A stretch of DNA of 64,000 bases, taken from the NCBI GenBank assembly GCA_047495785.1, contig JBLDXI010000011.1, forward strand, positions 1,798,001 to 1,862,000, written 5' to 3'. Source of the stretch: Lepidodermella squamata (Eukaryota > Animalia > Gastrotricha). The notes beneath the pieces are model-generated. The model was not told the DNA's origin and ran no database searches. It saw nothing but the letters and a program-made list of their open reading frames with translations. The position numbers and the translations under genes were made by a program. Positions within the stretch are counted from its first letter, which is position 1, and each line of letters begins with the position of its first letter. Of this stretch, positions 3,432 to 53,106 are shown piece after piece.

Positions 3432-4654
3432 TTAATTTCCAGTACACGTATTAAAAATGCTAATGAAATAGGCTGAGCCCATACTGTCAACTCGCAAGTT
3501 AGGCGACGGTGATAAAAGCAAGCAGCATCCTAGGAAAGTTGAAGCCCCGTATGTTCCGTCTCTGGTTTGCTGAATACAAAAACGGAAAATTGCAGTATAA
3601 CACGGCGAAACATGTGAATAATTACCAAAGTGTTCGTAACGGCAACGTTTCCGTTTGGCGAAGTATATGGGAAGCGGAAACAAGTTGGGTATAATGATCC
3701 ATCATTCGATGGAGCTGATATCTTGTAAGGTGCATCAGCTCCGAGCTTTTGAATACACGCCAAAGTAGGTGGGTTGCTGGGATTAACGCTTGGAATCGTT
3801 TCGTATATAACGTCACCGCCCGAGTTCGCGGCATTACAGCAATCCGAAAATGATGAAAACGTATTTGGCAATGCAGTAGAATCCTGAAAAATACACAGGT
3901 AGGAGAGCAAAGTAAATTTGTCGCTTCTTACCACTGAAGTATATGTAAAGACGGAGTTGCATGCCGCGCCATTCGATGTGCAGAATAGCACGTTACTTTT
4001 CGATATCGTGCTGGCATCGCCTTGTGTCTGCGTGATCATGCATAGCTTGTAGCTGACGGTCTGGATTATATAACAATTCAAAGTTAGGCGAAATATTATG
4101 CTGCTTTTGTAACTTATGCAACTTACTGGACTACTCGAGCAAGATTGCCCACTGGGGCATTGAGTTGCTGTTTTGAGAATGCAGTTTTTTGAAGAAGTGT
4201 CGCAAATATTGGCGGTCGGCGTACAAGACTGACCGGTTGGACATGAGGACCCACTTTTAGGCACGCACATGCTTGTTGATATATCGCATACGTTGGCTGA
4301 TGCCACACACGAAGACCCAGAGCTACACGGATTGCTTGTCGATAAGCAAGACTGACCAGTGGGACAAGACGAAGAGCTGCAGGGACTGCTTGGCGCTAAA
4401 CACGACTGGCCACTTGGGCACGGATTGCTTGTTGATTGACAGGATTGGCCAGTAGGGCAAGACGACGAGCTACACGGGCTGCTGGTCGTTGTACTAGTAG
4501 TTGATAAACACGACTGGCCAGTAGGGCACGGATTGCTCGACGATAGACAGGACAGCCCAGTTGGGCAAGCCGGGCTTAGTGTTGAGGTCGACGCAGGGCA
4601 AGCTGCTGCAACGGCACAAACAGCCGCCAGAATGGCAAGAATGAACAATTCCAT
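3432..4654 (-). CDS. Secreted Cys-rich family member 1 (~350 aa, intact, 4 exons)
   Basis: Exons 4654-4127, 4060-3932, 3883-3626, 3569-3432; all GT-AG, phase 0. Signal-peptide-like MELFILAILAAVCAVAAA-C, about 8 CPxGxSC repeats, then family motifs LC..FCxxNGxxC / FSxCC..YE..C..PY..CxRFP / FxxCC..C. Confidence 0.88.
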
Positions 4655-26163: not shown

Positions 26164-27167
26164 ATGTTGTCCAGCAATTGCAGCCGTTTGATTTTTTTGA
26201 TTTCATCCCTGCTTTTTGAGACTGGAGACGCTTGCCCTTCGTCATCGACTCCATCAAAATTCGAACCATTTACCTACCCGCCTATATTTGCTTGCCCAAG
26301 CAGTCAGATATGCGCGCCAGTCAGTAACCCGTGCTTGGAAGCATCAAAATCTTGCCAGCTAACACCTACTGTAAGTCAGATTTTGAGATAGACAAGTACC
26401 AGATGTTTAGCAGGTTTTGGATGAACATTTCTGCTCAGTTAACATCCAAAATAGATTGCATTTATCATCCAACATTCATATTATCTCTCTAAATTCCATG
26501 TTTTGCAGCCAGCCTTTCAACTTTGCACTGGCGCGACATTCGGCGGTGAGGGTATCAGCCAGAATGTCAAGTTGTGCACTTCCAACGGTCTGGCTTGTAC
26601 AATAGTTTTCGGCAGCACATTCACGGTAAGAACAACGTCAAGTTTCATAGTCATTTATCGGAAGTTTTGCCCAGCAAGCCGCAGCAACGCCAACTGTCCC
26701 GAACTCTTTCATGACATTCGCCGACTGCTGCAACGCTGCAGCCCCAGCTAGTCCGTATGCCGCCAACATTCGTTATGAACTGATTCCAGGCATCTCGTCA
26801 TTTATCGTGCCATCTATCGCATGCATCGGAACGGCTGATGCCTTGCCGTACAAGATTACAATGCCTTCTTATAACATGAGAATTGGCAACTGCGTCCGCT
26901 TCCCGCATACGGCCAGCGCCTTAACCGATATACCCGCAGCTTTACCCTGGGTGGTGAGAGCATTTTCATAAATCCTTTTTGCAAGGATACTGACATGTTT
27001 CATCGTAGCCAACTTACCCTGCAGCTACTTACGCGTACACTTCGTTCAGAGACTGCTGCGCTGCTCTTGCTTGGAACTATTTTTGTTGCTATCCGAACTA
27101 TCTAGTTTCGGCTGTGACTACTGCTTACGGTCTCACCTTGGAACGGTGTCAAGCTATAACTCCATAG
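26164..27167 (+). CDS. Secreted Cys-rich family member 3 (~253 aa, intact)
   Basis: Exons 26164-26370, 26509-26625, 26675-26953, 27009-27167; phase 0; family motifs present. Confidence 0.85.
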
Positions 27168-32883: not shown

Positions 32884-33727
32884 ATGAAAGCCGAAATTAT
32901 AGTCATTCTCGTCACGGTCTTTGCCGTTGTTACTGCCTGTCCAGCGACATCCAACTCAACCCCATGCCCGGTTAAGACTGCAGTTGAAACAGTAGCGACT
33001 TGCCCCAACGGCCAAAGTTGCCTAACGATATCGAATCCTTGCCCGACCAGCCAAAGCTGCTTCAACTCATTCAATCCATGCTCAGACGGCAAAACCTGCT
33101 CGGTACCACCTGTCTTTACGCTGTGCGAAATCACCGCAACCCAGGGCGATCCTGCAACCGTTTCGAAACCAAATGTCAAGTTCTGCACAGCCAATGCAGG
33201 ATCATGCACATCAGTGTTGAAAACCGGCACCACTGTAAAGCTATAACCAGCCGTATCTGATGGAAGTTGTTAACTGTGATTGTTACAGATTGCTACAGGT
33301 GTTACTCCAACGACCTTCTCGACTTTTAGCGAGTGTTGTCAGGCTGCAGCTACGGGCGCGACCCTTAAATATGAATACGTCCCAGTCGCATCGGCCGCAC
33401 CAGTATCGACTTGCATTGGTGCTGCAAAAGATGCAGCTTATCCAATGACAGGGCTTTCGACCACATCAAAGAACTGTATTCGATTCCCACATACAGCCGG
33501 CCAAAGCACCCATTTCTTAACATCAACTGGGGTAAGAAATTTGTTGATGATTCACGATGCAATTTGATATATGCTTATGCAACGATTTTCAGCCCACCAG
33601 GCCTCCGTCCACCTATGAATTCGCATCGTATGCGCAATGCTGCACGGCCGTAGCCTCCTATTCGACTCTTCTTTTCAGTGTGATCCCTGTTTACGGCGTC
33701 TCGTTTGATATTTGCCTCGGTGCTTAA
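32884..33727 (+). CDS. Secreted Cys-rich family member 5 (~242 aa, intact, 3 exons; intron 1 absent)
   Basis: Exons 32884-33234, 33289-33531, 33593-33727. Signal peptide MKAEIIVILVTVFAVVTA-C. Confidence 0.9.
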
Positions 33728-36420
33728 CATTAATCGAAGCACGGCTAAAGTTCCGATCTAACTGCGAGCGCTGAAACTGATCAGGTTCCAATTAATTTAA
33801 CATTTTGTAATAATTTTTAAATCTCCGATAACCGAAGTAAGGGTGGAGCTTCATTTATTTAAATACTGAATATATTTTCAAAATTAAATATCAATGGTTT
33901 ATGCCTATCAGTGCGATTTTCGAACAAAGTTTTGAATTCACTTTTCTTGGAATCAGCTTATAATAAACAATTAACTCGAGCAGTGCCTTTGGGTGTATCA
34001 TAGGAGAACAATTTCTCAGGAGCCATTTGAACACACAATTGGCGAGTTCATTCGCGTGCAACGACGGCATACGAAATGTATTTATTATACCTTATCACTG
34101 TAAGAAAAGTTTCAAGCTTATTCGCCACATGAAAACTTTTCCTGTAGCTCTTTCAACTTATAACCACCGATTTCCTTCGCACGCAATGACGGCAGTGTTA
34201 TTGGCTACAGGCTGCAGGTAGCAAAGTGCAAAGTGGTTGTATAGGTACTACACGTTAAAGTATTGTCGGCAAATATTGTATTCACCCTATGATTTGGGTT
34301 CATCCTGCAGAATTTCAAAGAGTTTTGCAGAGATCTAACAGGTGTTGATTTGCACAAGCCATTTCTCTCCACAATTATTGGCAGTAAAAAAAGCCTACTG
34401 GCACCCAGCAAAATACCGTTTTCTTTATTAAATTTTCTCCATTACATCAAATTCTCGACGAACTGTGCCGACATTGCAGCAGCTCATGGTGGAAACAAGC
34501 CGCTTCAACACAGCTGATGAACGGCTTGAAAGAGCACTTGCAGTACACAGTACACCATTCGGCAGCCTGAAGCCTGATGATTCGCCAAGCGGATGACCCC
34601 CGACCAGCACAACTAGCCTAGCTCCTCGCAATGTCGCAATGATGCCCCTCAAGGCCGCAAAACATAGAATCACATAATTCTTCAATATACTCGATAACCC
34701 TGAGTGCCACGTCTTCTGTGTCTTTCCTTGTTAAGCCTTTGGGACCTGAGAGCCTCAGAACTGGCGGCCTAAGCCTTCCGGAGGAACGAGTCGCCTGTAT
34801 TCAGACCCTGTAATTTCTCGTTCCAAAAGCCTGAGCCTGACGCCTGGCACCGCGGATACTTGAGACCTGAGCCCTGATCCTGTAGCCTTATGCTGGTGAG
34901 GTGTGAATCGATAGCGTACCCCGTTATCATACGATCGAATATCCCTGCTTTCGATCTATACAGTAAATACATCTTGAGCCATAACCCTTAGCCCTTTCAT
35001 GGCGGAATTATTTATATCTGCGGTAGAAAAAATATTTGACAGCAGTTTTGGGAGTTTTCGAAGGTTGATTACGATTTTGAAATCCGTTTGTCTTTATCTA
35101 TCACTGTTAGGGCTGTACAAAAAGTGGCCGAAATCGTCCTATCCGCCCAGCTGATTTCAGGCGATTTTTCGAGCACCCTAACTTCTGTGTCAGGTGTGTT
35201 CAGTTTCGGAATTTTAAATTCTAAATTAATCCCATGAATGTCCCTAAGATTCTCCCTCACTTATATCACCGAAAACATTCAGATTAAAAAGATTCAGAGG
35301 CTCAGCATTCAGATCTGAATTCAGCTTTTCCAGTTTTAGCTCGCGACAGTTTTTGCAGCACAAAAATCACGCACTCCGCCTCTTGAGCGGATAGGACGAA
35401 TTCGGCCGGTTTGATTTAATCTCAATAGCGTCGTCATTTTTAATTGCCAACTCGAAACAATTTACATTGTAGCCAATGAGACTATGACGGACACGGTGGT
35501 ATTTTTTGTTGGATCAAAAAATGATCAGGAACTTATGAAATCTCAAGTTAAAAAAAAAATCGAAATTTCAATCTCAGGTTGACTATTTTCAAATTGCTGG
35601 TATGCCTTGACCATGCAAGATAACGGTGCCCTGGTCTCAAAACCTTGTAGCCAACATCGAAGAGCAAAGGCCCTCAAAAGGGCGATCAAGAATTCATCAA
35701 ATCAAGTCGAAATTCCGAAATCGTCCTTCCCGCCGTGAAAGGGTTAGTCCTGAAATTAACTTTTCTCCTTGTTTGTCAATTCCGCAATTCCGCGAAGGCC
35801 GACCAACAATGCTCCAAAGGTAACTATTGTGCTGATGATGCCCTAAATTCGGCAGACGGTTAGCCATTTCTCGACTGTCCAGAAGGCTCCAATTGCAACT
35901 GAATGCTTACTGCCCAGTGATTCGGGCACCGGCGACTAATCTTTCATGTAAAGTGTGATGTTCGGGGTTTATAACCCGGAAGTTTGGCACCTTTCAGCTA
36001 TTTCCACGCTGCCTGTCTTCAGACGGTTTCATCAGGTGTATATGGTCAGCTCAAATGATACTCACATAATATTCGTGATACTCACATTGTACTTACATGA
36101 ATGAAAATAAAATTGGTGTTGACGTAAAGTAATGTTCATTACACACAACAGCCAGTTGTAGTAGTTTTACTCGCACCTTATAAGAGTAATTCATGAGAGT
36201 AGAATTTATGTAGTAGCTGTTATGAGGCAATGACTTATGTGCTTGTACTTGCATGAGTAAAAATGTCATATCTGAACGAAGCCAGCCGAGATTTCTGAAT
36301 CGTAGCGAGTCGAAGACGAGTTTTAATATGAGTAATTCAAGTACAGCTAGTTCAGATTTAAACGATTTACGAATTTCAATGTTATATCAATTCATTTCAA
36401 TTCATTATTTCAATGTTATA

Positions 36421-37307
36421 CTTGAAAAAGTAAGCACGTTCAAGTATCTAGGTAGCATTATAACTGATGATGGAAAAATCGGCGAGGAACTTAAAGCGCG
36501 CATTGCGAAAGCAGGTAGTTGCTTTGGCGCGATAAGTAAATTTATGTGCAACCGAAAACATGTCTCTTTGGCGGTAAAATTAAAAATATTAAAATGCGTT
36601 ATTATTCCAGCTATGATGTATGCCTGCGAGTCATGGAATATTACGGAAGACGACGAAAGTACGCTAAATACCCAAGAATATAAGTGGCTGCGATGCATTT
36701 TAGGAATTACAGTAATGGACTATATTCCCAACATAGATATCAGACTATCAATGTGTGGCGGAATAATTGAAGTCGGTAGATTAATTGAAAAACAACGACT
36801 TAATTACCTAGGTCATATAATAAGGATGGAGACCTATGTCGACGACAAAGGTGAGCCGATACCACCGGGGCCAGTCTACGACCTTTATAGGTGGGTTGCG
36901 CCTAAGGAAAGGAAGAGACCGGTGGGGAAACCTCGAACTAGATGGCTAGATACGGTTGAAAGAAGTTTAAGTAAAGTAGGACTTACAACAGAAAATATAA
37001 TAAGAAAAAAACCGACGGGTCCCGTGGCAGACCTCGTAAAGATGGTAGTAATGTAACCGAAATTTCCGAAAAAACTGTTGACTGGACATTTACCGAAACA
37101 ACGGCATTAGATCGAGTTGAATGCGAAAAATAGTTGAGTCTCTGGAAGATTTTGAATTTTATAACAAAAGTAAGATTTTCTCGGCTGTGGGGGAGGGTGA
37201 CTAAAATTTTTCCTTTTGGTTTGCCTTGCCTTCGCCTTCCTCAAAGCCCGAAAGGGTACAGACGTCTAGTCGCGGGGAAGAGAAACAAATAAATCATTTT
37301 CAATCAT
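36421..37307 (+). mobile_element. 5'-truncated RTE-clade-like non-LTR retrotransposon
   Basis: EKVSTFKYLGSII..ARIAKA..MYACESW..RLNYLGHIIR..RPVGKPRTRWLD (stop at 37056). Flanked by the direct repeat TTTCAATGTTATA (36408-36420, 37308-37320). Confidence 0.85.
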
Positions 37308-37499
37308 TTTCAATGTTATATCGTAGAATATACAATTGTCCTCAAAGATATAGGTAGACCGAGTAGCTTGGCCAATTAGATATTTTACGATGAAAAATTC
37401 GTAAATATAGAATTGTCGTCAAAAATATAGGTCGAGTCGCTATGACAATTCGATATTTTACGGTATAACATTCGTAAATCGTTCATATCTGAACTCGCC

Positions 37500-38720
37500 G
37501 CACTCGATTTACTCATCGCAACTCGCCTCCGGCTCGTTCCGACTCGTAAATCTCGGGCGGCTCCGTACAGATATAAACGTTTTACTCATGTCATACCATA
37601 CAAATATAGCCTTCGTCAACGAAAGCAAATGATCGGCATCCGAATGGCCGTAACTTTGAGACGTCTCCTGTTTATATCCAAACATAAGTTCGCACGGAGT
37701 TTTACCGCCATTGAAATTAATACGGCGCGAACGAGACTGCGCCAACATTTTTGTTTCCCTACTTTGTTTGGCAATGTGACGGCGGGCGATTAGGACAGTG
37801 ATGACGTAGTCGAAGCAGTAAGCCCACATTCGCTTGAAAAGGCCAGTTTCGTTCAAGATCGTCCTACGATATTCCGCATTTGACGTTCGATAGTGTTCTT
37901 CTGCTGGGAATTCCCTCAGTTGTAATTTGCAGAAATCACCCCAATCCGCCGATTTGAAATCAAGTCCATCATCTGACTTCAAATAGACAATGTTAGTGTT
38001 TACAAGTGTTGTCATATGTGAGTGGTAAACTTTAAACGCATCGATCGCGTCAGATTTCTTGGCTAGGAATTGATTCGAGGTATAACGGCTGAAATCATCC
38101 ATGACAACTCGTTCCAGATGTCGCTTTCACCGAATTTGAACTGGAAAATTAAGTTCTCATGATTCTTTTCCTGCAAAATCCAAACTGAATTTTGAGGGTC
38201 CACCTTAAAGCATTCATCTTGTCCGTTCATCCAACGTGACGAAGTTTCTGTTCATTACAATGAGCCAGACGTCGATGCCACAGAGAAATTGGCTCGCCAC
38301 GTTCTTAGGCCTTTTCAATTCGGCTTCAAGGAAGAACAACTCCTCCCCGATCAGTTTCTCGTTTCGTTTGTCGTACATTTCACAGTGATCCTCGTCGTAG
38401 ATTAATCGACATTTCTGGCTCGTGATGGCCGCCCCTACTGCTGCATTTTAAGTCGGGTACGAACACTACCTTCTCTAGCATGGCATTTTTTGCTCGCATT
38501 GCTAGTTTGACTGTGCCAATGCCTCGGCATTCCATCTCCTTTCCATTGGCTGCTCGAACCGATTCTCTGCCCTACTCTGCCCTACATCCACCGTGAGAAC
38601 CGAGTTCGCGTGTCAACGTAAGCGAGTTTGTGTACCAAGCGTCGAGTCTAATGAGGTTCGGTTCGTCTTGCCGCTTCGCAAGGAACTTGAAGAGGGTCCG
38701 CCAATGGCCCAAACTCCCCT
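37500..38720 (-). pseudogene. Degenerate Ty1/copia pol relic (protease/integrase)
   Basis: VRAANGKEMECRGIGTVKL (~38500-38560), LWHRRLAH (~38260-38285), MDDFSRYT..KKSDA..LKSDDG. Frameshifted; no LTR pair seen. Confidence 0.75.
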
Positions 38721-38829
38721 CTCACCTTGCTCGCCTTTGATCATCAGACCTCCTCGTGGACCTCAACCCGGCTTCAGCTAAACCCTAATTCCAATTTTTA
38801 CTTTCCTTTATATTTTTCAACCTATTAGT

Positions 38830-39664
38830 CTTGTGATTTCATGCAGTTTTAGTGTTTCTCTTCGTGACTCTCCTCAACTTGCGGACTACCCGCCACTTGA
38901 AAACACCCCTACACTCACTTCTTTGCATGGCTCCATCTCACACACGAGCTTTTCTTTAGTCATGTGATGTGGACGGACGCAGGCCTACCCCGATTTTTTA
39001 CGTGAAAACATCGCGAAAAAGATAATGAGCCAATTTCTTTCACTGCTCCCGTGCAGGCAAAAATGAAAAAATACTTTTATGTTTTATGTTTATGCCGGCG
39101 TGCAAACGATTCTTACGATCTATAGCTGGTAATGCATTTCCAAGTCGCATTTAGCCTCCATATCAGTAACGGCATCAACGGCAGAATCTTCTCCAGCAGA
39201 GTCATTAATGATCGTCACGAAGATGACAGCCAACCTGGTGGCTGCTCATGCCGTGATACTCGCATCTGGAAAAAGCTACTTCGAGCACTGCTGCCACAGA
39301 CATTTCACGCGTGTAACCGACAGCTAACCTGAGTGAAAAAAATGAACAAATTACCGGTTGTACGTTTGCGCCGGTGTGCAAACGATTCGTACGATCTAGC
39401 TTGTTATAGCTGGTTTAATTTCCAACGCGCATTTGCTATCCATATCAGTAACGGCATCAGCAGCAGAATACTCTCCAGCTGTCGTTAATGATCGTCACGA
39501 AGATGATCGTCATGACGTTTCGACTGAATTCGCACCTGGAAGGTAAACAAAATTCCTTTTAGTGTCCTCCCAAGAAAAAAATCAGGCTATATAAGAGGCT
39601 AACGGCGAAGAAACTTTCATTTTCATTGTTCGAATCTTCAACTACTTGTCATTCTTGCTTTCAA
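38830..39664. repeat. Upstream block duplicated between members 6 and 7 (copy ~44000-44756), with an internal ~280-bp tandem repeat
   Basis: High similarity by eye. The sub-repeat beginning GTGCAAACGATTC occurs twice in each copy and once upstream of member 5 (~32535). Confidence 0.85.
39588..39594 (+). promoter_or_regulatory. Putative TATA box of member 6 (equivalent at 44680-44686 for member 7)
   Basis: TATATAA 70 bp upstream of the ATG in both genes. Confidence 0.6.
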
Positions 39665-40597
39665 ATGAAAGTTGAAATTTCAGTATTTCTCGCCGCGGTC
39701 TTCGCCGCTGCTACTGCCTGCCCAGCTACATCTAACACAACCCCATGCCCGGCTAGGACTGCCGCAGTTGAAACAGTATCCACTTGCCCCAACGGCCAAG
39801 GCTGCCTAACGCCATCGAACCCGTGCCCGACTGGCCAAAGCTGCTTAAACTCATTCAATCCATGCTCAGACGGCAAAACCTGCTTGGATCCATTAGCAAA
39901 ACCGCCGACATGTCCCACCTTGGTAAACTTCGATTTTCCCACTTGATCAAAAGTCGAACCGTGTTTTAGCCTCAGGATGTCTTTACGCTATGCGAAATGA
40001 CCGCAACCCAGGGCGATGCTACAACCGTTCAGCAAAAGAACTTGAAATTCTGCACAGCCAACGCAGGATCATGCACATCCGTGTTGATAACCGGCACAAC
40101 TGTATAACTAGCCCGTATCTAATGAAAGTTTGACAACTTTGACTGTGATTTGCAACAGATTGCTACAGGCGTTGCCACGACGACTTTCTCATCATTCAGC
40201 GACTGCTGTGCAGCTGCGGCGATCGGCAAAACGCTTAAATATGAATATATCCCAGTCGCTTCCGCCGCGCCAGTATCGACATGCATTGGCGCTGCGAAAG
40301 ATGCTGCCTACCCAATGACAGCCGCCGCCCCAGCTGGAAATCGGTACTGTGTTCGATTCCCGCATACAGCCTTTCTGTCAAACTATATTTTAATGTCAAC
40401 TACAGTAAGAATATTTTTGATGACTTTCGATTAAAGTTGATATACACGTCAACGATTTTCAGCCCACCAGGCCCCCGTCCACCTATGAATTCACGTCATT
40501 TGCGCAATGCTGCGTGGCTGTCGGTGCAAATACCAATATTGTTTACGAAACTCAACCCTTTTACGGCATCATGATCGAGGATTGCTATGGTTATTAA
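39665..40597 (+). CDS. Secreted Cys-rich family member 6 (~256 aa, intact)
   Basis: Exons 39665-39922, 39970-40101, 40159-40404, 40463-40597; phase 0. Confidence 0.9.
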
Positions 40598-42599
40598 CAT
40601 AAACGGAAGGCTCTAGTATGACTAATTTGAATTTCGAGCGTGATTTTGCGTTAAATATTTTGTAATTATTGTTAAATTCCCGATGAGCCAAGTACAATAT
40701 ATTTACTTAATGAAAAATAATTAAAAATAAAACAGTTCATATCTGCACGTAACATATGACTATCAGCAACATTGTGAAGCAAACTTTTGGATAAACATTA
40801 TTCAGAATCAGGCTCTGTGCATTTGCTGAAACTATCTGGAACCGCTTGAAACCGCTGAAACTCGCTGGAACCGTTTGAAACCGCTGAAACCGAATGGAAC
40901 CGCACAGAGTTCACTTGCACGCAACTACGTCAAACGGCAGAGTTAGCTGTTAGCTACCAGGTAGCAACGTCCGGAAGGCCCGAAATAAGCCACTTTTCTG
41001 GCACCTAACAAATCTCAGATCATCATTCTTCATGTGTTTCTAGGGCTCATTTGCTTGTGGCTAATTAAACGACGTCATGATTGTCAAAGCAAGCTCGACG
41101 GTGGACGATAACATAGAACGATACAGCGAATCTATGATCCTGGGGGTCGAAAACAAAGTACTTCGTATGTTTCAGTGAAGTTTTTCCAAGCTTTAACAAC
41201 TTGGGAACTCAAAATCATCAGTTTTAGCCAAGAAAAAAAGTGTACAGTAGAAAACCGATACAGTGGATATCGGTATCAACTGTATCGATTTTGTATTTAC
41301 ACTCGAACAACCGATTGTGGCCGTGTTGCCGAAAGGCCGACCTTTGAGCCTCCTCCTATTTGTTCTTCAATATATTGTCCTGCGAAGTCATACAGACGAC
41401 GGTAATCGTACGGTAAGGTCTCCAAAGGAACCTATGCTGATGATGCCCTGAATTCGGCTTACGGGTTGTAACTTCCCGATTATACCAGACAACGACGGGC
41501 CTATACTGCCCAGTGGTGCGGACGCTGGCGATTAGTCTTCCTTGTACAGCTTGTTCGGTCTTTGTAACGCGAAAGCTTGGCACACTTCGACTGTTTATTC
41601 CGCGCTGCCTGTCTTCGGGCGGTGTCATGGCAACTTATAAGCATGTGCTCGTGATACTCACCTGTATTACATGAATGAAAATGAAATTAGTGTTAACGTA
41701 GAGTTATATTCATTACACAGCAGTCAGTTGTAGTAGTTTTACTCGCACCTTATGGAATAGCTTTACGTAGTAGCTGTTATGATATGACTTCTTTAAACTT
41801 TAAGCTATAACATGAGTAAAAAGGTCATATTCTGAACGAGATTTACGAATTTACGAGGTAAATCGAGTTGATCGAGCCATTAAACTGAAAAAACCAAATA
41901 TAGCACTCGCTCGAAAACGATGGTGTTGGTTGATATGCTCATGCGATATTCGTAAGACAATTTAAGAGTATTTCATTCATGATTTTTGTGACAAGTGCAG
42001 CATTGTAACATGCATTGTCAATTTTTCGACCCTTAACCTATCCTTACTAAGAATTAGTGTTCTCATCTGAGCCACTTTTCTCATATTATTTACGAACCCC
42101 CTAATTCTTAGAGACTTCAGAGCTAAATACTGTCTTTCCGACTAAACGGTAACCAAATTACCGCGTGACTGTCGTTTTTTGGCAGGGGCGGCTTTTCTGG
42201 ATTATCGATTCAAAGCGATCACTTCTAACCTCTAAGAAAAAGGTCTTTGTGGAGGGCAGAGAGCTGTGCCGATTTCCCCTTGGGACTTTAGGACTCGATT
42301 TGTCGCGACCCAGGAAAACTAGCTCTTCAAAGCTGCTAATCGGGGGTTTAGGTGGAGTAGTATATATTAAACTTAGATCATATCATCATTTTTTAATCCT
42401 ATCATCGATATTCTGTTCCTTCTGTTCTGTTACTTTCTCTGCTCTTTCCTTTGTTGAGTTTAGTGAATGAATTTGAAGATTTATCGTAAATAATACGGCG
42501 TTTGGAAGAATACTGGATATTATGCGCAAGATTCTAGGCAGGACAAATGCCGGATCAGTCCTGGAAAATTATGTACAGGACCAGTTCTGGATGGTAGCA

Positions 42600-43700
42600 G
42601 GTCAGTACTCGTATCCTATGCAAAAGCTGGATTAGTGCTGGGTAATTATGTTGGAGGCGTGCTGGAATACAGGAATATAGGAATTTTTCGTTTTGATCGG
42701 ATAAAGGAAGCTGATGATCTATTCGGCGAACGTGGTGGCGCTGCTATGTTTGTTCGGAAGAGGACTCTCGTGATCTCCGAGCGGCGGCTGGCCGCAAGCT
42801 GAGTGATCGGCCCGCTTAGATCCTTGGATCTTAGATCTCAGATTTCTCGAAGCTGAGTTTGTTGCGGCCTCCCGTCAAGTCTCATGTGTGGGAATACAAC
42901 CGCGTGATTTGTTGCATTTCGTGACCCGTCTTGGTTTGGCGGTCCTTCCCTCGTCGCGGCACGGCACCCTGTCTAATCGATCTCTGGTTTGTTAACGTGA
43001 AGCTTTTTCGTCTTCTCGATCGCAGCGTCTCTGTTTGCGACCACCTTAGCAGCGATCATTCTGTTTATTTTCGTCTTCCTTCCAGCTCTGGTCCGCCTGA
43101 TTTTTAAGAGTTACGAGCTCGCGGAACCTGCCCCACGTTACGGATCTGTTTGACAGCTATTGTACCCTGCTCCGCTTGCTGTCCGAAATCGCGTTGCCAA
43201 ATGGCAATTGCCGAGTCTCGCTGCCGACCGGATCAAGGCTTTAGACGTCGAGTTGCGCACTGCGAAACTGCGTCGTAGTGTTTCCAACCTGTGCTACGTT
43301 GAAGCTCTCGTTTGATAAGTTTGCCCTAATCCTGTAAGCCGCCTGGCCAACATTACGTTTGCCGATGAGTGTCTTGCCGCTCCGTCTACTGCCCTTGCTG
43401 ATCCTCTGCGTCAAACCGATATCAGCTGTGGCAACGACAAGAGGACGATGTCGCTCTGCGCTGTCGGAAGTTGAGCCTATCCCGATGGCCGGCAAGTCGC
43501 AAGACAATTTTTCGTCATAGCTTAATATTGTCTCCCTGCTTCCTCTTGGAGTCAATCATGGCTCGGTGGATGACCCAGTTTCTCGAAAGTCAACACTTTC
43601 TTCACGAGGATCAGTTTACCTTCCGTCCGCACCGCCCCGCGCCTGATGTCCCCATTCGCACTTCCGTATTGGGTGTGTAAACAGCGCCAAAAGTTCAATG
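42600..43700 (+). pseudogene. Degenerate LINE ORF2 relic (APE endonuclease and start of RT)
   Basis: FRFDR..GERGGAAMFVR (APE RxDR..GGGV motif, ~42685-42760) and FLESQHFLHEDQFTFRP (QFGFR-like, ~43580-43630). Heavily decayed. Confidence 0.55.
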
Positions 43701-44756
43701 CTAGCGAGAGCGAAGTTAGCCTCGAAAGAGCAGCGAAAGCGGAAGCTCTCAGTTCTCCTAAACGACTGCTTTCGACGATGTTGGGGATTTGATTTATCCG
43801 ATTTTTCTTTCACGATTTTTGAACTTTTTTGCTGTTATTTGTTTTTTGGGCATTGATTCGAAAGAATAAAGATTTGATAGACGCAAAACAACTGTTTTCA
43901 CCTTTGCTTCCGTGTTACAGGCTGCCTTGTTTATTCTTCCTGGGATGCCCATCCCGTGTCTTGGCGTTACCTTAGCCTTGTGGTTTTATGTTTCTCAGCA
44001 GTGTTAGTGTTTCTCTTCGTGTCTCTCCTGAACTTGCGGACTACCCGCCACTTGAAAACACCCCTACACTCACTTCTTTGCATGGCTCCATCTCACACAT
44101 GAGCTATTCTTTAGTCATGTGATGTGGACGGACGGAGGCATCCAACAATTTTTTGCGTGAAAACAGCCCAGGAAACCAAAAATGAATGAAAAAATGTTTA
44201 TGTTCATGCTGGCGTGCAAACGATTCTTACGATCTATAGCTGGTAATGCATTTCCAAGTCGCATTTAGCCTCCATATCAGCAACGGCAGAATATTCTCGA
44301 GCAGAGTCATTAATGATCGTCACGAAGATGACAGGCAAGCTGGTGGCTGCTCATGCCGTGATACTCGCATCTGGAAAAAGCTACTTCGAGCACTGCTGCC
44401 ACAGACATTTCATGCGTGACATGAGTGAAAAAAATGAACAAATTACCGGTTGTACGTTTGCGCCTGCGTGCAAACGATTCCTACGATCTAGCTTGTTACA
44501 GCTGGTTTAATTTCCAACGCGCATTTGCTATCCATATCAGTAACGGCATCAGCAGCAGAATATTCTCCAGCTGTCGTTAATGATCGTCACGGAGACGATC
44601 GTCACGAGGTTTCGACTGAATTCGCACCTGGAACGTAAACAAAATTCTTTTCAGTGAGCACATAAGAAAAAAATCAGGCTATATAAGAGGCTAACGGCGA
44701 AGAAAGTTTCATTTTCATTATTCGAATCTTCAACTATTTGTCATTCTTGCTTTTAA

Positions 44757-45687
44757 ATGAAAGTCGAAATTTCAGTAATTCTCGCCTCGGTGTTCGCCGT
44801 TGTCACTGCCTGCCCAGCTACATCGAACTCAACCCCATGCCCGGCCAGGGCTGCCACTGTTGAAACAGTTGCCACTTGCCCCAACGGTCAAAGCTGCCTA
44901 ACGATATCGAATCCGTGCCCGACCAGCCAAAGCTGCTTAAGCTCATCGAATCCATGCTCAGATGGCAAAACCTGCTCGTCACCACCGCCGCCATGTCCCA
45001 CCTTGGTAAATTCCGATTTTCTCATCTGATCATGAATGACGATGTTTTAGACCCCGCCTGTATTCACGCTTTGCGAAATCACCGAAACCATGGGCGAGCC
45101 ATCAACGATCCAGAAAAAGAAATTGAAATTCTGTACAGCCAATGCAGGATCATGCACATCCGTGTTGAAAACCGGCACAACTGTAAGAAGCTATAGCCGC
45201 AGCCCGTAACTAATGAAAGTTTTACGACTATGATTGTAACAGGTTGCTACAGGCGTTGCTACGACAACCTTTCCGTCATTCAGTGACTGCTGTGCAGCTG
45301 CGGCGGTCGGTAAAACGCTTAAATACGAAGACGTTCCAGTCGCTTCCGCCGCGCCAGTATCGACATGCATTGGCGCTTATAAAGATGCCGCTTACCCTAT
45401 GACAGGCATCAATACCCCATCATCAAATAAGTGCTGTGTTCGATTCCCCCATACAGCCATTCAATTCGCCGATTTCCAAATGTTTTCTTCAGTAAAAATA
45501 TTTTTGATGAAATTTGATATATATATATATATATGTCACCGATTTTCAGCCCACCAGGCCCCCTGGCACCTATGAATTCACGTCATATGCGCAATGCTGC
45601 TTAGGTGTAGCCGCAAATCCCACGTTTCAATTCGATTTTGCAACCGTTTACGGCGTCTCGTTCGATGTTTGCATCGGTCATTCTTAA
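44757..45687 (+). CDS. Secreted Cys-rich family member 7 (~255 aa, intact)
   Basis: Exons 44757-45005, 45051-45182, 45243-45491, 45550-45687; phase 0. Confidence 0.9.
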
Positions 45688-46594
45688 ACGGAATGCCTCA
45701 TATACGGCTAAAGTCGAAGCTGATAACAGAGAGTGCTGATTCCGATCCTGTCGATTTAACAAGTTTTCAATAATTGTAACATTTCAATTTATCCGGCTTG
45801 TTCCGCACATTCTGCACAATTTGATTCTTACTATGCAAAATAGTTATAATAAGATTTTTTATAATAAAAAGTATATATTTTTTCGGATTTTTCGGAACTG
45901 AAACCGGCATCTATTCAGTTCCACGTCCAGCAATCCTATTCCGCGGGGTGTTCAACAAAGAATGTGATTTAAATCCTATTTCAAAATATCAAGGATTCAA
46001 TGATTCATGTTATTAAAGTCATAAATTTTAACAAAGTTAATACATAGCTTTTCATTGGCAGCGCGTAAAGCCAAGGTGGAAAACTCAAAAAACCAGCGGG
46101 GTGGTTACCAAATTTGGGCCCGAAAATACCCCGTGGCTCGGGATCTTGAACTTACCTGAGAGTAAAGTTATGTTTTTCGGACTTGAAACTAGACGTGCTG
46201 CTAGACTTCAGCAAGCACACCTTCAAACAGGTATCGACTCTGAAGTATTTCGTGGTAATAATTTCGGATGGTCATAATCGGAAAACGACTTATCAAATGT
46301 TTCCGGGCTACCTATGTGTCTCCGGGTAGTGCCATGGCAGCTTACATCAGGTATACATATAATCAGCTTATAAGCCTGTGTTCGTGATAGTCACTTTGTA
46401 TTGACATGAAAGAAAATGGCAAAAGTAGTGTTCACGTTAGGTTATGTTATGTTGAGATATTCATTACTCAGCTATCAGTTGTGCTAGTTATGCTCGCATT
46501 TGGCTGTTATGAGATGACTTACTTACATAGCTGCAAAACCTATAACTCGGGAAATACTTTCACGATTCTGAAATCTGTTCTGCTGCCTAGTTTG

Positions 46595-47779
46595 ATGAAT
46601 ACCTTGGAATCTCTCCTGATTTACTTTATTTGCTCATCGTCACTATATCTTGGACTAACTGATGCGTGCGCTTCGACCGCTTCAGATACCAATGGAGGCC
46701 CGAAATTTGTCCCGTTCACAAATCCGCCTGTGACACCAGCGTGTCAATGCGTGCCAACGGCAAATATTTGTGACGTTTCGACAAAAAGCTGTGTGCCAAG
46801 TAGCAATCCATGCCCGACAAGTCAGACTTTTGCCAACGCGAGGTTGATATTTAATATTAATATTTAAATTCTCGAAATTTGCGGCGTGATTCAACGAAAA
46901 TAGATTCTCGTTAGGTTTCTTCGATTTCGAGAGGGATGTGTGATTTGAAGCAATTTTCAGTTTTGGATTGGTTTCGAGCTAGGCCAGACCAAACTATAAA
47001 AAACTATCTCACTGTTTTGTCAATTTTGAGAGGTTTTGATTGCGTTCAAGTGCAAAATCTTCAACATTTTCAACATTCGCGTGTTAGTCGAAATCACTCA
47101 TAATTATTTTAATTTCGTTATCATTTATTTTCCTCATATTCTCTCCCAGGCTGCTTATCAATTGTGATCCTTTCAAACCAATGGGATTGGCACTGGCTTA
47201 GCTCAATATGTCAAGTTCTGCCACAACGTCGCCGGAGCATCGTGTACCGCTTATCTAACAGCAACACCTCCTGAAGTGGTAATTGTTTCATTAGCTCACC
47301 CACACACGATGTAGTCTATATCGACCTAGCCTTCTGTCGACGCGACCAACAGCTTCAGCACATTTGCTCAATGCTGCGCAGCCACACACCCTACGGTTGC
47401 CAACATCAAGTACGAAGTCCTCCCGCAGCCGAGCGGTGCGCCCGGCATATTGACCTGCATCGGAGCTAATGACGCGGCCCCCTACAAGATGACAGGCGCT
47501 ACTGCAACTGCACAGTCTGGCTCTTGCGTTCGTTTCCCACATACAGCTCTAGCTGCTGGCGACGTCGTCCTAAGTGGCGGAGTGGTTAGCATGCGATTAA
47601 TTTCTAATGAATTTTGCGATAATTTACTCTTTTTACAGATTACCTCCCCAACGGGTCAATATAACCACGCTACATTCTCGGCTTGCTGTTACTATCTCGC
47701 CAGCGCCCCAGGCCCAAAAGTAGCCCCCACCACAGCAATGATTTATGGTCTGGCGATTGAAACGTGCACCCAGTCGTAA
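46595..47779 (+). pseudogene. Secreted Cys-rich family member 8 (probable pseudogene)
   Basis: Extra TT near 46829 frameshifts the end of exon 1 (ACTTTTGCCAA vs ACTTGCCAA in paralogues). The conserved exon-2 Cys codon is TGA at ~47165. Exons 3-4 remain recognisable; stop at 47779. Confidence 0.8.
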
Positions 47780-48590
47780 AAAACAAATCTGTTCATTCTT
47801 TTGAAAAAAGTCATAATTACTGAAATTTGAATATTGGAAGAAGAAGAAAGGATAGAGCGCACTGCGTTATGGCGCTTCTCTGAGACAGTTCGCCCCTCAG
47901 GACTAGAAAATACTGATTTATCGCAAATTCATCCGATTTATTTATCATTCACGGCAGGCGCAGACGAGGGAAGGCTAGTTCGGAAGTTGTGATCGGAGTA
48001 AAGCGAGGTCCAGGAGACAGAATGAAATTGTTGGACTGGGAGCGGGAAGTCGGACTTTCAGCATCCAGCATACGCTCATTTGGGGAGAAAGACTGGTGAT
48101 TTCGCAAGCTTCAGAACAGTGAGCTCTAACTCGATAGTCAATATGAATATTCGGAAAAGAGGGATGAAACCCTATGCTTAATGCTTAGGAAAATTACGCA
48201 ACAAGTTGCAACAAGTGCTTTCGAATTGCTTGGAATTTCTTCTTTACTGTTTGTTGCGGTAATTGTTTCTTCACTGACGAAGGGTCAGCCTGAAATCGTG
48301 CCTAAAGAGACGCATCGAAAACCTAGCTTACGAACTGTGAATCAATGCCGCGAGCGCTGTTTCAGCGGTGAGAGCCGCACGGTCTCAATAGGCATTTGGA
48401 AAATAGCCTTTGAAACCTTCATTTTAAAACAACATCCGTTTTTGATAAGGAGCGGATTTTCATTTGAACGTCGATGCCCACGTTAATACAAAAAAGTTTC
48501 GTGTGTGCCATGCCACTTAATGACGGTTTAGCAGCATATGACATGGCTTTCTTTTACAGCTGCACAACAAATAAATTTAGAAATTATTCT

Positions 48591-49785
48591 ATGATTTCAC
48601 ATTGGAGAGAAATTCCAACTTTCATCCGGATTCCTTTGAGCCAGGACCTAAATTATAAAATAATCTATTACATTTGCGTGTCATCAACGTTTCTTGGATT
48701 GACTGGTGCGTGTGTCTCGCCCACGCCAGCAACTGCCTCAGGCCCAATATTCGTCCCGTTCACAAGCTCGCCAACATTAGGCTGCCCAGTCGGTCAATCA
48801 TGCACATCGCAGCCGAATATTTGCGACTCATCGACGAAAAGCTGTGTACCAAGTAGCAACCTGTGCTCAGACTCTTCGAAAAGCTGTTTAACAACAGCCA
48901 ATCCATGCCCCTCAAGTCAGACTTGCCAAAGCGCGGTAAGTAAATTCGCTGACTTTGTTTCTCAATGGCCCAAAAAAGACTGGTAGGGTTTTGCTCTTCT
49001 AAATTCGGAATATAGGATTAAAACTGCCCTATGTAGTTGGCCATAAAAGCCGATGAATGAATGAGGCGTTGCTATTCGTGCCTTTCGTGGTATTAGATTG
49101 GGATTATTTTTTAAGAATACTTGAATAATTGTTACTCGTTTTTTTCTCAGCCCGTTTACAGCTTATGCCAAATAACGACGATTGGCGGCAGTGGCGTAAG
49201 TAAGCCGGGTGTAAAATTCTGTTTAGATAACGGCGGAGCGTGTAGCATGTTGACGGGCGCAACCGTAAGACCATCAGGACACAATTGTCCCTTAGATTTA
49301 TGCAACTTGTCGTCTAGGAAATGCCCACGACGCCTAACAAATTTTCATCGTTCTCGGCTTGCTGCACAGCGGCTGCGTCATTTTCGACACCAAGTGCCGC
49401 CTGGTACGAAAAAGTAGCATTCGCTACGCCATCGAACACATATGCAATAGCCTGTATTGCGTCGGTCAATGGAGCACCTTACTTTGTTACGAAATCGTCT
49501 GCGTCTCCTACCACCGCTAACTGCGTGAGCTTCCCGCACTCTGCTGAAACTGGCACTGATGCTCTCATCACCAGTACTTTGGTATGAGTTATGCCCAACT
49601 TTCATTGCTTCGAATCGATTAAGTATCCACCTAAATAGGTAACCAACCCACCGGACACATATCAGTATTCAACCTTCGCCGCTTGCTGCCAGGGCATCGG
49701 TGCCGCTCCTGGAGCTGCGATTGCGCCGTCAACTGTCAGACTTTACGGGCTCATTCTTGAGAAATGCTCTGTGCCTAGTGTTTGA
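48591..49785 (+). CDS. Secreted Cys-rich family member 9 (~289 aa; start codon uncertain)
   Basis: Exons 48591-48935, 49151-49264, 49318-49581, 49639-49785; phase 0, no stops. Confidence 0.8.
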
Positions 49786-50236
49786 GTTGAAAGCGGCATT
49801 CCGTCGGCTAGCGCTCATACATTTATGTGATCAAATTTTTGATATGCTTTCACTCTGATCTACTTTGTAGAATGCGGCTTATCTCAAGCCGAATCGAACG
49901 AGCCATCACATGCAGTTTGGGGCCTGGGAAGAAAATAGCGAATAAAAGTTATCACTACTACTTATTTTTGCAGGGTTAATGACTTTAATCCAGTTTTTAT
50001 GTAGCTGATAGTAGGCATAATGAAAAATGTAATGATGCATAAAGCTATTCTTATATGTAAACAACTGAGCTGTTAATTGATCATTTCGTTGAAGACAATT
50101 TTCCGGGTTGCGCAAGCACCTGGCAGTAATCTTTTCTATAATGAAGTGAAATGATTGCAGTGGTCACGTTAAAACAGCTACATTGAAGCTTTCAGGTGTG
50201 CTAGTTATTAGTTATACTCGCATTTGGCTGTTTCAG

Positions 50237-51449
50237 ATGGTTATATTAAATGAAGGCGTGAAATCTACACTGATTTATTTAATGTTTTCAGCATCAGTAT
50301 TCCTTGAATTGGCTGATGCGTGTGTTTCGACCGCTTCAGAAACCAATGGAGGCGCTAAATTCGTACCGTTCACCAATCCGCCTGTAACGCCAACTTGCCA
50401 ATGCGTGTCGTTAGAAAATACATGCGACGTTTCGACGAAAAGCTGTGTACTTAGTAGCAATCCTTGCCCAACAAATCAGACGTGTCAAAGTTCGGTAAGT
50501 ATTTTTACTGCAGTTTTTGCCGTTGCTCAGATTTATTGAGTGCCTTGGGGAAAACAGACAAAGAGTTCAGGGCTGCGTTTTATACTCACATAAAACGCTC
50601 CCATAAAAGTTCGCAAGTTTTAAATTGCGATAATCAGTTATAAATAATAGAATCTCGAATACTTACAGGTAAGCGAGGAACAAGGTTGCTAAAAAGGATG
50701 AGTGTGAGTGCATTCATCTTTAAGTTGGTTTTTATAGTTTTGCATGTCCCCTCCCCCTCCCCTCCATTCCGCCTATGCATTGTATTATTATTGATTATAC
50801 CATTTATCACATTACAGCCTGTCTACAATCTATGCCAAATCACCACAATCGGCGGCTCAGGTGTCACTTCGAATATACATTTTTGCCTGAATAAGGGCGG
50901 ACCCTGCAGCCAGTTGATTGGCGCAACGGTAATCCACAAACAATTTTTACCTGACAATAGCTTTCACAATAGCTGTCTAATTCCAGCCAGCTCCAGTGCC
51001 CAACATTTTCTCAACGTTTTCAGCCTGCTGTCAAGCGACAACAAACTCCCCGAAGTTGATCAAGTTCGAGCATGTCGCATTTGCGACGCCTTCGAACACG
51101 TTCGCAACTGCCTGCATTGCAGGTTGGACTGAAACGCCGTACTTTGTGACAGGAGCCACTGCTTTCAGTCCTGCTTATGACTGCGTGCGTTTCCCCTACA
51201 CAGCAGCGAGCCCGGTTAATACCGTCGCTTTTACTATTCTAGTAAGACACTTACGAAGCTGTTTCAACATCGTCAATTTCAAATTGTACTTTGCAGCCGT
51301 CTTATCCAACCAAATATAACGGCTATTTAACTTACGCAGCGTGCTGCCGGATAATTGGTTCTGTTTCACGCTCAGAAATCGCGCCGTCGACAGTTTCAAT
51401 TTATGGACTAATCGTAGAGAGATGCTCCGGGCAGAACTGGTTGCTATAA
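50237..51449 (+). CDS. Secreted Cys-rich family member 10 (~258 aa, intact)
   Basis: Exons 50237-50494, 50818-50928, 50987-51241, 51297-51449; phase 0. Confidence 0.85.
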
Positions 51450-52009
51450 TTGTTGTTTGTTATCATCGTCTTTCGCTATTACGCAATTTTGATTTTGCTA
51501 CAACCTGTACCAGCGTGAAGTTTGAGCCGAAAATACAGCTATCTACGCTTTTCAGACTCAGAAACGTGTTGCAGACTGCAGACAAAGAATTTGTTGTTTT
51601 AAAAAACCATGAATGGCAGATCCTCAATGTTCAATTCATTTTCAAACAAGGAAAAATCACAGCTGAAGTAAAATTAATATAATAATACTCCGAGTTCCTT
51701 ACACACTGCCATCGCTTTCGCCTAACGAAAATTAAGTCTGAAATTTCCTAGGAATAATGTGTAAAGGGGAAAGCAACTTGGTGGAGAATTGAGCTACGTT
51801 AATAATTCTGAAAGCGCAATCATTTTGATAGCAAACCTTTTATTCAGCAGTGGTCACGTTAAAAGATGTTCATTATAGCCGGCCGGTGAGCTTGCTCGCA
51901 TTTAGTAGTTGTTTTGATCGCGAGAAGCATATAGTTTCTCAGCCTATAAATCGGTTAATTTCAGCTTTTTAGAAGTAATTATTTACAACTGTTAAGCGTG
52001 CATAGAACT

Positions 52010-53106
52010 ATGAAATCTTTGACATCTTTTAATGTTTTGTTGATTCATTGCATTTTCACATCACTATTTCTTGACCTGGGCGATGCATGCGTCTCAACCA
52101 CTTCAGAATCTAATGAAGGGCCAAGGTTTGCTACTCTGGCAGTCACGCCGGCTTGTCTATGCGTTCCGACGGCCAATATTTGCGACGCTTCGACAAAAAG
52201 CTGTGCACCTATTGGTAGTAATCTATGCCCGGCAAGTCAGATTTGCCAACTCTCGGTAATTTATAAAATGACATTTGCTGTTTCTGGAATAGTCAGATTG
52301 ATTATGAGCTGGCTTGACTTGAGCTTGTCCTGTTGTTGAGCCGCCAAGGCTGTTTTCTATTTATGTACCTTAGTTTAAGGCGATACTTGGTTTTATTAAT
52401 TCCATACCCGCTTTTACTTTATTTCATCTAACGGCTTATTATGTATCGCATAAAATAGCCAGTCTACAACCTTTGCCAAATCACCACTATCGGGAGCCCT
52501 ATCATCGCTCAGACGATCAAGTTTTGTTTGGATAATAGCGGGGACTGTGGCCTGTTGACCGGCGCAACAGTAAGCACAATCTGATTGCGTTGAGTCGAAA
52601 TGATTTTTTTTAATTCCAGCCAGCTCCGTTGCCCAACATATTCTCAACGTTTTCAGCCTGCTGTCAAGCGACAACAAACTCTCCAAACTTGATCAAGTAC
52701 GAACATATTGAATTTTCGTCGCTTTCGTACACGTTCGCAACAGCTTGCTTCGGTGCCTTGACAGAAACGCCTTACCTTATAACAGGAGAGTCGTCCTTTC
52801 CCCAAATTGCTCACTGCGTGAGCATTCCGCATTCGGCATCGCATCCACTTCATATTGCCGTTAACAGATTGGTAAGATAATTTCGAAAAAAGTGTACAAT
52901 CTCACTGATTTAGTTGTGTTGAACAGCCTATGCGGCCAATCGCAAATTCTCACAGCTATCCAACCTTTGCGGCCTGTTGCAAGGCACTCGGTGCCCTCAT
53001 AATATCACGGCCAGAAACGGCATCGACAGTTTCGCTTTACGGGCTCGTTGTAGAGGGCTGCATTGCTTATGAAAATACATACAGGGTGATCCAAAAGTCT
53101 ATGTAG
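52010..53106 (+). CDS. Secreted Cys-rich family member 11 (~262 aa; C-terminus donated by a Tc1/mariner TIR)
   Basis: Exons 52010-52255, 52459-52569, 52620-52871, 52927-53106; phase 0. Confidence 0.85.

Follow-up and report, generated by a model that had tools for sequence, protein, structure and literature searches.

Loop divergence on a conserved cysteine scaffold among three tandem paralogues of a lineage-restricted gene family in the gastrotrich Lepidodermella squamata

Three neighbouring genes of Lepidodermella squamata raise the question of whether the three short protein segments in which they differ most have been driven apart by diversifying selection, as a sequence-only reading of the locus had proposed with a putative ligand-binding face like those of immune receptors or venom peptides in mind, or have diverged for other reasons. 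The genes, members 5, 6 and 7 (m5, m6 and m7) of a large family, are located in a window of 64,000 nucleotides (assembly GCA_047495785.1, contig JBLDXI010000011.1, positions 1,798,001 to 1,862,000), which is the whole stretch of DNA analysed here and to which all coordinates below refer. What is new is the loop-specific evolutionary pattern in these three members, and diversifying selection on their loops is found to be partly supported.

Three members of an orphan ten-cysteine family

From their predicted gene structures, m5, m6 and m7 are tandem paralogues represented by intact genes of three or four exons, all encoded on the plus strand. Member 5 (243 aa) spans positions 32884–33727, with exons at 32884–33234, 33289–33531 and 33593–33727. 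Member 6 (257 aa) spans 39665–40597 (exons 39665–39922, 39970–40101, 40159–40404 and 40463–40597) and member 7 (256 aa) 44757–45687 (exons 44757–45005, 45051–45182, 45243–45491 and 45550–45687). The introns of m5 are phase-0 with GT..AG ends, and introns of about 50 nt are seen in the contig. The close exon/intron likeness previously described for all three genes has to be restricted, as m5 is devoid of intron 1 and of the CPTL module of about 10 codons. The segment carrying m6 and m7 is transposon-rich and 12 kb long. In the C29 counterpart of the region, 12.4 kb including both genes are missing, with about 0.7 kb in their place. Gene content may differ between haplotypes, m6 and m7 being present in one copy of the region only.

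Further family members are found on both sides of the three genes. On the minus strand, one at 3435–4654 shows a long CPxGQSC repeat region with introns that are read through in frame, and another at 10025–12082 consists of exons 2–4 at 10025–10567 and a repeat exon at 11510–12082. On the plus strand, exons 2–4 of an additional member bearing an additional Cys pair in loop V3 (see below) are located at 26512–27164, and members 8–11 follow at 47174–53103, with their exons 2–4 at 47174–47776, 49154–49782, 50821–51446 and 52462–53103.

Judged from the sequences retrieved, the family is lineage-restricted, disulfide-rich and predicted to be secreted. It comprises at least 150 scored exon-3 loci and 249–324 first-look candidates, corresponding to roughly 300 genes. 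The architecture consists of a signal peptide and a stalk of CPxGQSC-type repeats, both judged by eye from translations, followed by a C-terminal part, about 170 residues long, in which 10 cysteines are conserved. Three phase-0 exons encode this part, and a two-fold repeat, F-x-x-F-x-x-CC ... C-x-G, is present within it. Exons 2-3-4 with short phase-0 introns and 3+4+3 conserved cysteines are present in m5–m7, which belong to the 87 genes among the retrieved loci having all three exon types in order; none of these 87 is wholly intron-less. Invariant or near-invariant columns among 47 exon-3 sequences are F-x-x-F-x-x-CC, Y-E, C-x-G, P-Y and C-V-R-F-P-H-T-A, a further motif is the second CC ... 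Y-G ... C, and all family motifs are found in m5–m7.

A profile search covering 1.84 billion representatives resulted in one true match, P0002 (Logan SRR30674226), a spliced transcript from a different organism, which is the sole outside relative and at most 49% identical to any sequence of this genome. A second match, P0001, was rejected as a spurious tandem-repeat protein with 12 short stretches. P0002 has the same architecture as m5–m7 and aligns with them end to end, with the exon junctions free of gaps. In Pfam, no family was found with single exons and longer reference ORFs, and a word-index protein search with a 374-aa member and P0002 as queries did not yield relatives. Profile and sequence searches of the PDB gave no match and the ESM Atlas no usable one. 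Comparison of the P0002 model with known folds did not result in a meaningful match either (best Foldseek E-value 2.5, best VIA Z-score 3.5), and no Ig, LRR, FReD or lectin domain was recognised with Pfam, PDB sequence search or Foldseek and VIA on this model. From the folding alignment, exon-4 fragments were omitted because MAFFT misaligned them onto the first internal repeat.

Loop divergence and codon tests

The peptides quoted earlier as barely alignable, before and after CxRFPHTA and after the exon-4 CC, were all found where stated, and these patches are three variable-length loops of the family, situated on either side of the invariant C-V-R-F-P-H-T-A and after the second CC. In m5, loop V1 (33451–33474) consists of the 8 codons directly 5' of the C-x-RFPHTA motif, V2 (33499–33531) of the final 11 codons of exon 3 and V3 (33644–33691) of 16 codons 3' of the exon-4 CC. 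The equivalent positions for V1, V2 and V3, likewise on the plus strand, are 40321–40347, 40372–40404 and 40514–40561 in m6 and 45405–45434, 45459–45491 and 45601–45648 in m7, whose V1 contains one additional Cys. In P0002, V1 and V2 each contain one additional Cys as well, a hint that the two loops are neighbours in space; in the AlphaFold model of this protein, V1 and V2 are of low confidence (pLDDT 37–62).

Among m5, m6 and m7, protein identity is only 17–31% in the patches versus 78–82% elsewhere (Fisher p = 1e-9 to 3e-13), and the mismatch load of the best three 11-residue windows was matched in 0 of 2000 shuffles. Therefore, the contrast between loops and rest is real and exceeds chance. 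As V2 and V3 have equal lengths in m0, m5, m6 and m7, their divergence does not result from misalignment, and an origin of the patches by frameshift-compensated indels was ruled out, as the patches are in-frame homologues with a nucleotide identity of about 50%. Variation is also seen in the middle of exon 2, at the end of exon 1 and in the C-terminal tail. Calling the paralogues near-identical was too strong, with an overall protein identity of 71–75% and a scaffold pS of 0.24–0.39, and members 10 and 11, which were thought to behave alike, diverge over the whole remaining exon and not in the loops alone.

Codon statistics were obtained from joined coding sequences with local scripts and complemented by codon ML. 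For the pair m6–m7, loop pN amounts to 0.47–0.49, about twice the scaffold pS of 0.24–0.27 (Fisher p = 0.007, and 5e-5 with introns added). The introns of the two genes differ at 11/45, 9/50 and 13/58 positions (0.18–0.24), so that an excess of loop replacement over intron divergence, suggested before as a check, is indeed observed. With loops sharing the scaffold time, codon ML gives an omega of 0.39 for the scaffold and 3.7 for the loops, and the LRT of loop omega = 1 under this shared time is 16.1 (p = 6e-5). Allowing a separate loop time does not result in a significant gain (p = 0.20), and omega = 1 combined with a 3.15-fold loop time fits equally well (lnL –987.82 versus –987.91). When the synonymous sites of the loops themselves serve as the reference, omega is between 0.5 and 2.0 and never significantly above 1.

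For counting at the family level, independent sister pairs (cherries on the family tree) were used, i.e., 12 paralogue cherries and 13 young pairs. The pooled cherries show a loop pN of 0.352, a loop pS of 0.386 and a scaffold pS of 0.321, and family-wide loop omega is therefore about 1. Loop dN exceeds neutral divergence in 5 of the 12 cherries but not in the pooled family, and four cherries besides m6–m7 have loop omega values of 2–3 (p = 0.0004–0.03). In the 13 young (or allelic) pairs, pooled loop pN is 0.019 versus a pS of 0.052 (omega 0.36, p = 0.0005), so that the loops are under constraint there. Between m5 and its C29 counterpart, at a flank divergence of 6.6%, exon 3 has accumulated 7 synonymous and 0 nonsynonymous changes. 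Scaffold omega rises as well, from 0.23 in young pairs to 0.50 in paralogue pairs, so that the loops are not alone in accelerating after duplication. In sum, the proposal of diversifying selection is supported by the m6–m7 loop pN exceeding pS and introns and by the shared-time omega, but not by the pooled value or by omega on the loops' own sites.

The explanation that we consider best, with chances we put at about even, is an episodic diversification of the loops on the disulfide scaffold after duplication, giving loops with copy-specific function. Accordingly formulated as a sequence of steps, exposed loops would gain amino-acid replacements above the neutral rate after a duplication, while the disulfide scaffold would be held by purifying selection; in copies that have become established, the loops would be conserved once more. 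The copy-specific function carried by the loops would most plausibly be that of a binding surface. What we infer from this pattern is that positive selection would have caused the divergence and that the loops would be surface-exposed and engaged in binding.

Alternative explanations

A less likely alternative combines relaxed constraint with concerted evolution. The loops would be weakly constrained surface linkers drifting near-neutrally in the absence of positive selection, while from time to time gene conversion or unequal crossing-over among the tandem copies would homogenise the scaffold, the introns and, most of all, the 5' flank. With the tracts ending at the diverged patches, the neutral yardstick would be too short and the contrast exaggerated. 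The upstream block of m6 (39102–39661, plus strand), which contains a tandem duplication of about 280 bp, indeed differs by only about 4% from that of m7 (about 44200–44753), compared with 12–25% in the gene body, and the shift at the ATG is abrupt. The upstream flank of m6 and m7 has a different history from the gene body, and because this block is so little diverged, recombination or conversion acts at the locus. The similarity of the two upstream regions had been noted before and is present, but its extent is about 560–700 bp rather than 800. Apart from a repeat of about 70 bp at its far end, the block is found at m6 and m7 only, by which a transposon copy was ruled out. Also in favour of this alternative, near-identical tandem arrays elsewhere show ongoing unequal exchange, loop pS is above scaffold pS, and the model with separate times is significantly better in three pairs (m5–m6, p = 0.008; L034/L033, p = 0.0003; L020/L018, p = 0.04). 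The pooled loop omega of about 1 agrees with near-neutral drift, and in most of the family S/T/A/G/P make up about 60% of the loops, whose length also varies, as in weakly constrained linkers.

Within the genes themselves, however, the evidence points in the other direction. Between ATG and stop of m5–m7, no conversion tract was detected by the run test (p = 0.15–0.52), and quartet site patterns show one topology along the whole gene (31 sites versus 9 and 11). The exon-3 scaffold compared between m5 and m6/m7 has a nearly saturated pS of 0.51–0.55 and yet an omega of only 0.10–0.13, and has therefore been kept by purifying selection and not by conversion. Three islands of 8–16 codons, set apart by a conserved motif of 8 codons, poorly match the ends of conversion tracts, and the loops of young pairs are non-neutral, as seen from the pooled omega and from exon 3 of m5. 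No other DNA of the genome was found to match V1–V2 of m6 or m7, by which a recent donor of converted sequence was ruled out.

Local mutational heterogeneity appears improbable to us. Loop codons would then mutate faster at synonymous as well as nonsynonymous sites, possibly via slippage, indel-associated or multi-nucleotide mutation or short patch replacement, and no selection for change would be involved. Consistent with this, loop synonymous change is also elevated 2–3 fold in several pairs of high divergence, where omega is near 1, and V1 shows small indels, including an apparent 6-nt tandem duplication in m7. V2 and V3, on the other hand, are free of indels in the m5–m7 clade and not of low complexity in m5–m7, and no donor sequence was found elsewhere in the genome. 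Moreover, young pairs do not show any excess of loop mutation (loop pS 0.052 versus scaffold pS 0.053), and the loop synonymous excess of m6–m7 is not significant (p = 0.14–0.20).

Finally, m6 and m7 are very improbable as decaying, non-functional copies with loop divergence representing early pseudogene drift, since, although their segment is missing from the C29 counterpart and the cysteine number of m6 is odd, both have open frames, canonical phase-0 splice sites, 10/10 scaffold cysteines and every family motif, their scaffold omega of 0.39–0.41 is far below 1, and drift would not cluster in three loops.

Implications and comparison with known systems

If the loops are truly selected to diversify, as in the post-duplication diversification preferred here, the family would represent a compact and very numerous natural variant library on one small disulfide scaffold, and a tractable case of paralogues gaining new specificities after duplication, for which one genome supplies pairs of young and of older age as well as divergent haplotypes. 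If the loops are weakly constrained linkers, their divergence would be an ordinary trait of a fast-turnover orphan family. A much more far-reaching reading, which we regard as a long shot, is that the family, with its roughly 300 genes, is a germline-encoded repertoire of secreted proteins that serve in binding and have a 10-cysteine fold not described before, and that each duplication is followed by a new round of positive selection reshaping the three CDR-like loops. Invertebrates would then have a recognition or defence family of a new kind. To our knowledge, an immune repertoire has not been described for Gastrotricha, and hardly any work has been done on their secreted proteins, defence or surface biology.

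In its cysteine order, the family recalls the fungal hydrophobins, which have the pattern C-CC-C-C-CC-C. The last eight scaffold cysteines share the order C, CC, C, C, CC, C, here arranged as two repeats. The spacings in the m5–m7 family are far longer, however, its proteins have two additional cysteines as well as a repeat stalk, and they are animal and not fungal; no hit was obtained in Pfam at E ≤5, and structural comparison did not give a match.

Diversified secreted immune-type families of invertebrates are the FREPs of snails, the 185/333 SpTransformer family of sea urchins and the VCBPs of amphioxus. The m5–m7 family may be compared with these in being a large lineage-specific expansion, in its predicted secretion and in its variable regions on a conserved frame, and possibly also in a gene content varying between haplotypes or copies. 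It differs in that no Ig, fibrinogen or lectin domain was recognised.

Conotoxins and snake three-finger toxins are toxin families of accelerated evolution on disulfide scaffolds. No relation of the m5–m7 family to them was seen in sequence, Pfam or fold, and venom is not known from gastrotrichs. At about 245 aa and with their repeat stalk, the proteins studied here are also much larger, and their loop omega is not significantly above 1 on its own synonymous sites. By analogy, however, the pattern is alike in that signal peptide, introns and cysteine framework are conserved and replacements are concentrated in inter-cysteine loops, as well as in the presumed secretion and tandem birth-and-death arrays, and m6–m7 likewise show a loop dN above intron and synonymous divergence.

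Gene models, family size and relatives

The assembly containing the window is eukaryotic (121 Mb, 151 contigs), with a window GC content of about 44% and introns of roughly 50–60 nt; for Lepidodermella squamata, a published assembly of 122 Mb in 157 contigs (N50 3.9 Mb, 43–45% GC) with a heterozygosity of 3% and strongly divergent haplotypes is described (PMC11660948). By tblastn with exon peptides and subsequent iterated HMMs, a tandem gene family is found in the window, including the neighboring plus-strand paralogues m5 (exons 32884–33234, 33289–33531 and 33593–33727; 243 aa), m6 (39665–39922, 39970–40101, 40159–40404 and 40463–40597; 257 aa) and m7 (44757–45005, 45051–45182, 45243–45491 and 45550–45687; 256 aa). 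All their introns are phase 0 with GT..AG ends, m5 being devoid of intron 1 and about 10 codons (window 33075–33110). The deduced proteins show a signal-peptide-like start and CPxGQSC-type repeats, followed by a C-terminal part bearing 3+4+3 cysteines on exons 2, 3 and 4, with the first half of exon 3 resembling exon 4 as an internal repeat.

Genome-wide, an exon-3 search gave at least 150 scored matches among 249 candidates. In 43 stretches (42 loci plus the window), 91 exon-3 matches were located, of which 87 are accompanied by correctly ordered exons 2 and 4. Intron presence varies across the family: intron 3 is absent from L029 1443–1847 and from the outgroup member m0 (L001 3175–3561), in which exon 3 is fused to exon 4 and exon 2 sits 1.6 kb upstream, while intron 2 is absent from one clade (loci L019, L021, L022, L025, L030 and L032). 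Very young tandem amplifications are present at L039/L040 (C11:860000–879999; seven copies, period of about 2.5 kb) and L037/L038 (C11:1148000–1167999; at least five copies, period of 2.5–6 kb), exons 3 and 4 being identical or nearly so.

Neither Pfam, searched singly with the m5–m7 exons, nor a word-index protein search returned relatives. A profile of 47 exon-3 sequences run against 1.84 billion representatives revealed one true relative, P0002 (227 aa), encoded on a 929-nt Logan contig from run SRR30674226 that is intron-less and thus most likely a transcript. P0002 retrieves 324 candidates in the genome but shares no more than 49% identity with any sequence there and hence derives from another organism. 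Its end-to-end alignment with the spliced m5–m7 models (local script), gap-free at the exon junctions, lends support to the modeled splicing as well as to genuine expression of the family. The top profile-search match, P0001, was rejected, as this 635-aa perfect tandem repeat matches only a short C-x-x-F-P-x-T-A-N stretch, 12 times, and is taken to be a spurious repeat-derived ORF.

Three variable loops on a conserved scaffold

The sequence-only reading had described m5–m7 as near-identical apart from three hypervariable segments. The peptide strings it quoted are present and the contrast is real, with identities of 78–82% outside and 17–31% inside the patches, but it was overstated: overall identity is 71–75%, and a synonymous divergence (pS) of 0.24–0.39 in the scaffold makes "near-identical" too strong. 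Replacements cluster in the patches far beyond chance, even when allowing for their post-hoc choice. In a 64-sequence family alignment, the patches before (V1) and after (V2) the CVRFPHTA motif and after the exon-4 CC (V3) are the family's three variable-length loops, with an entropy of 2.5–2.7 bits versus 1.8 bits in the scaffold. Most are rich in S/T/A/G/P, those of m6 and m7 being among the most aromatic. An AlphaFold model of P0002 (80-row alignment) reached a mean pLDDT of 65, with 69–94 for residues 55–140 and 37–62 in V1 and V2. This model had no match in Foldseek (best E 2.5) or VIA-align (best Z 3.5), nor did the family in a PDB profile search and the ESM Atlas.

Two adjacent extra cysteines are found in V3 of one sub-clade (window 26675–27164; L010 6895–7385; L013 476–972; L006 292–805), one each in V1 and V2 of P0002, and one each in V1 and the CPTL module of m7, indicating that the loops gain and lose cysteines. 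Member 11 (window 52620–52871) has lost the near-invariant RFP of the motif, now reading C-V-S-I-P-H-S, yet is almost identical to its counterpart on contig C29 (L016 5583–5810).

Divergence of the m6 and m7 loops

Between m6 and m7, nonsynonymous divergence (pN, Nei-Gojobori) is 0.47–0.49 in the loops at a pS of 0.37–0.45, compared with 0.10 and 0.24–0.27, respectively, in the scaffold; the introns differ at 11/45, 9/50 and 13/58 sites. The loop pN is above the scaffold pS, both when the latter is taken alone (p = 0.007) and when introns are added to it (p = 5e-5). When loops and scaffold share a single mutational time, pairwise codon ML gives omegas of 3.7 and 0.39, respectively (LRT 16.1, p = 6e-5), and granting the loops their own time does not significantly improve the fit (p = 0.20). 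Pooling 12 independent sister pairs of paralogues results in a loop pN of 0.352, loop pS of 0.386, scaffold pS of 0.321 and intron divergence of 0.262, corresponding to a family-wide loop omega of about 1; five pairs, including m6–m7, individually exceed 1 under shared time.

Two alternatives, relaxed constraint combined with concerted evolution and local rate heterogeneity, may also generate the loop contrast. For m6–m7, a 3.15-fold longer time in the loops at an omega of 1 fits equally well, and for m5–m6, a separate-time model is preferred (p = 0.008), the loops of m5 being near saturation versus both m6 and m7. In 13 young pairs, however, the loops have a pN of 0.019 versus a pS of 0.052 (omega 0.36, p = 0.0005), the latter equaling that of the scaffold (0.053), so that on short time scales they are neither unconstrained nor hypermutable. 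Likewise, the exon-3 scaffold of m5 versus m6/m7, at a pS of 0.51–0.55 and an omega of 0.10–0.13, is kept by purifying selection and not by homogenization. As scaffold omega also rises, from 0.23 in young to 0.50 in older pairs, a general duplication effect accounts for part of the acceleration.

On conversion of the flanks as a possible source of the contrast, the evidence points both ways: the 560 bp upstream of m6 (39102–39661) and m7 (about 44200–44753) differ by only about 4%, whereas a Sawyer-type run test found no tract between ATG and stop for any m5–m7 pair (p = 0.15–0.52). Quartet site patterns with m0 as outgroup favor one topology along the whole gene (31 sites versus 9 and 11), and V1–V2 of m6 or m7 match no other genomic DNA. 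The upstream block is unique to both genes, which themselves differ by 12–25%, the shift being sharp at the ATG; in m6 it includes a tandem duplication of about 280 bp (39081–39226 and 39357–39506). Right beside m6/m7, either some recent exchange or strong constraint is at work.

The C29 copy and interpretation

A collinear copy of the region is found on contig C29 and represents either a divergent haplotype left uncollapsed or a recent segmental duplication. Between m5 and its counterpart there, divergence amounts to 6.6% in the 5' flank, while exon 3 shows seven synonymous and no nonsynonymous changes. All flanking genes (m5, members 8–11 and the member at 3435–4654) have C29 counterparts, whereas, in place of window 33828–46193 (12.4 kb, including m6, m7 and a pair of transposon-like ORFs), C29 has about 0.7 kb (L002 7334–8010 = C29:2669334–2670010), so that m6 and m7 are confined to one copy of the region, being either hemizygous or deleted from the other. 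Between m5 and m6, the ORFs at 36253–37056 (+) and 37509–38102 (−) presumably resemble remnants of retroelement reverse transcriptase and integrase; Pfam gave no significant match for either.

Taken together, diversifying selection is the best single explanation for m6–m7, albeit partly supported, and their loops would have diversified episodically after duplication and then been conserved. Regarding the loops as a ligand-binding face, and the family as immune receptors or venom peptides, would be to draw analogies with such systems.
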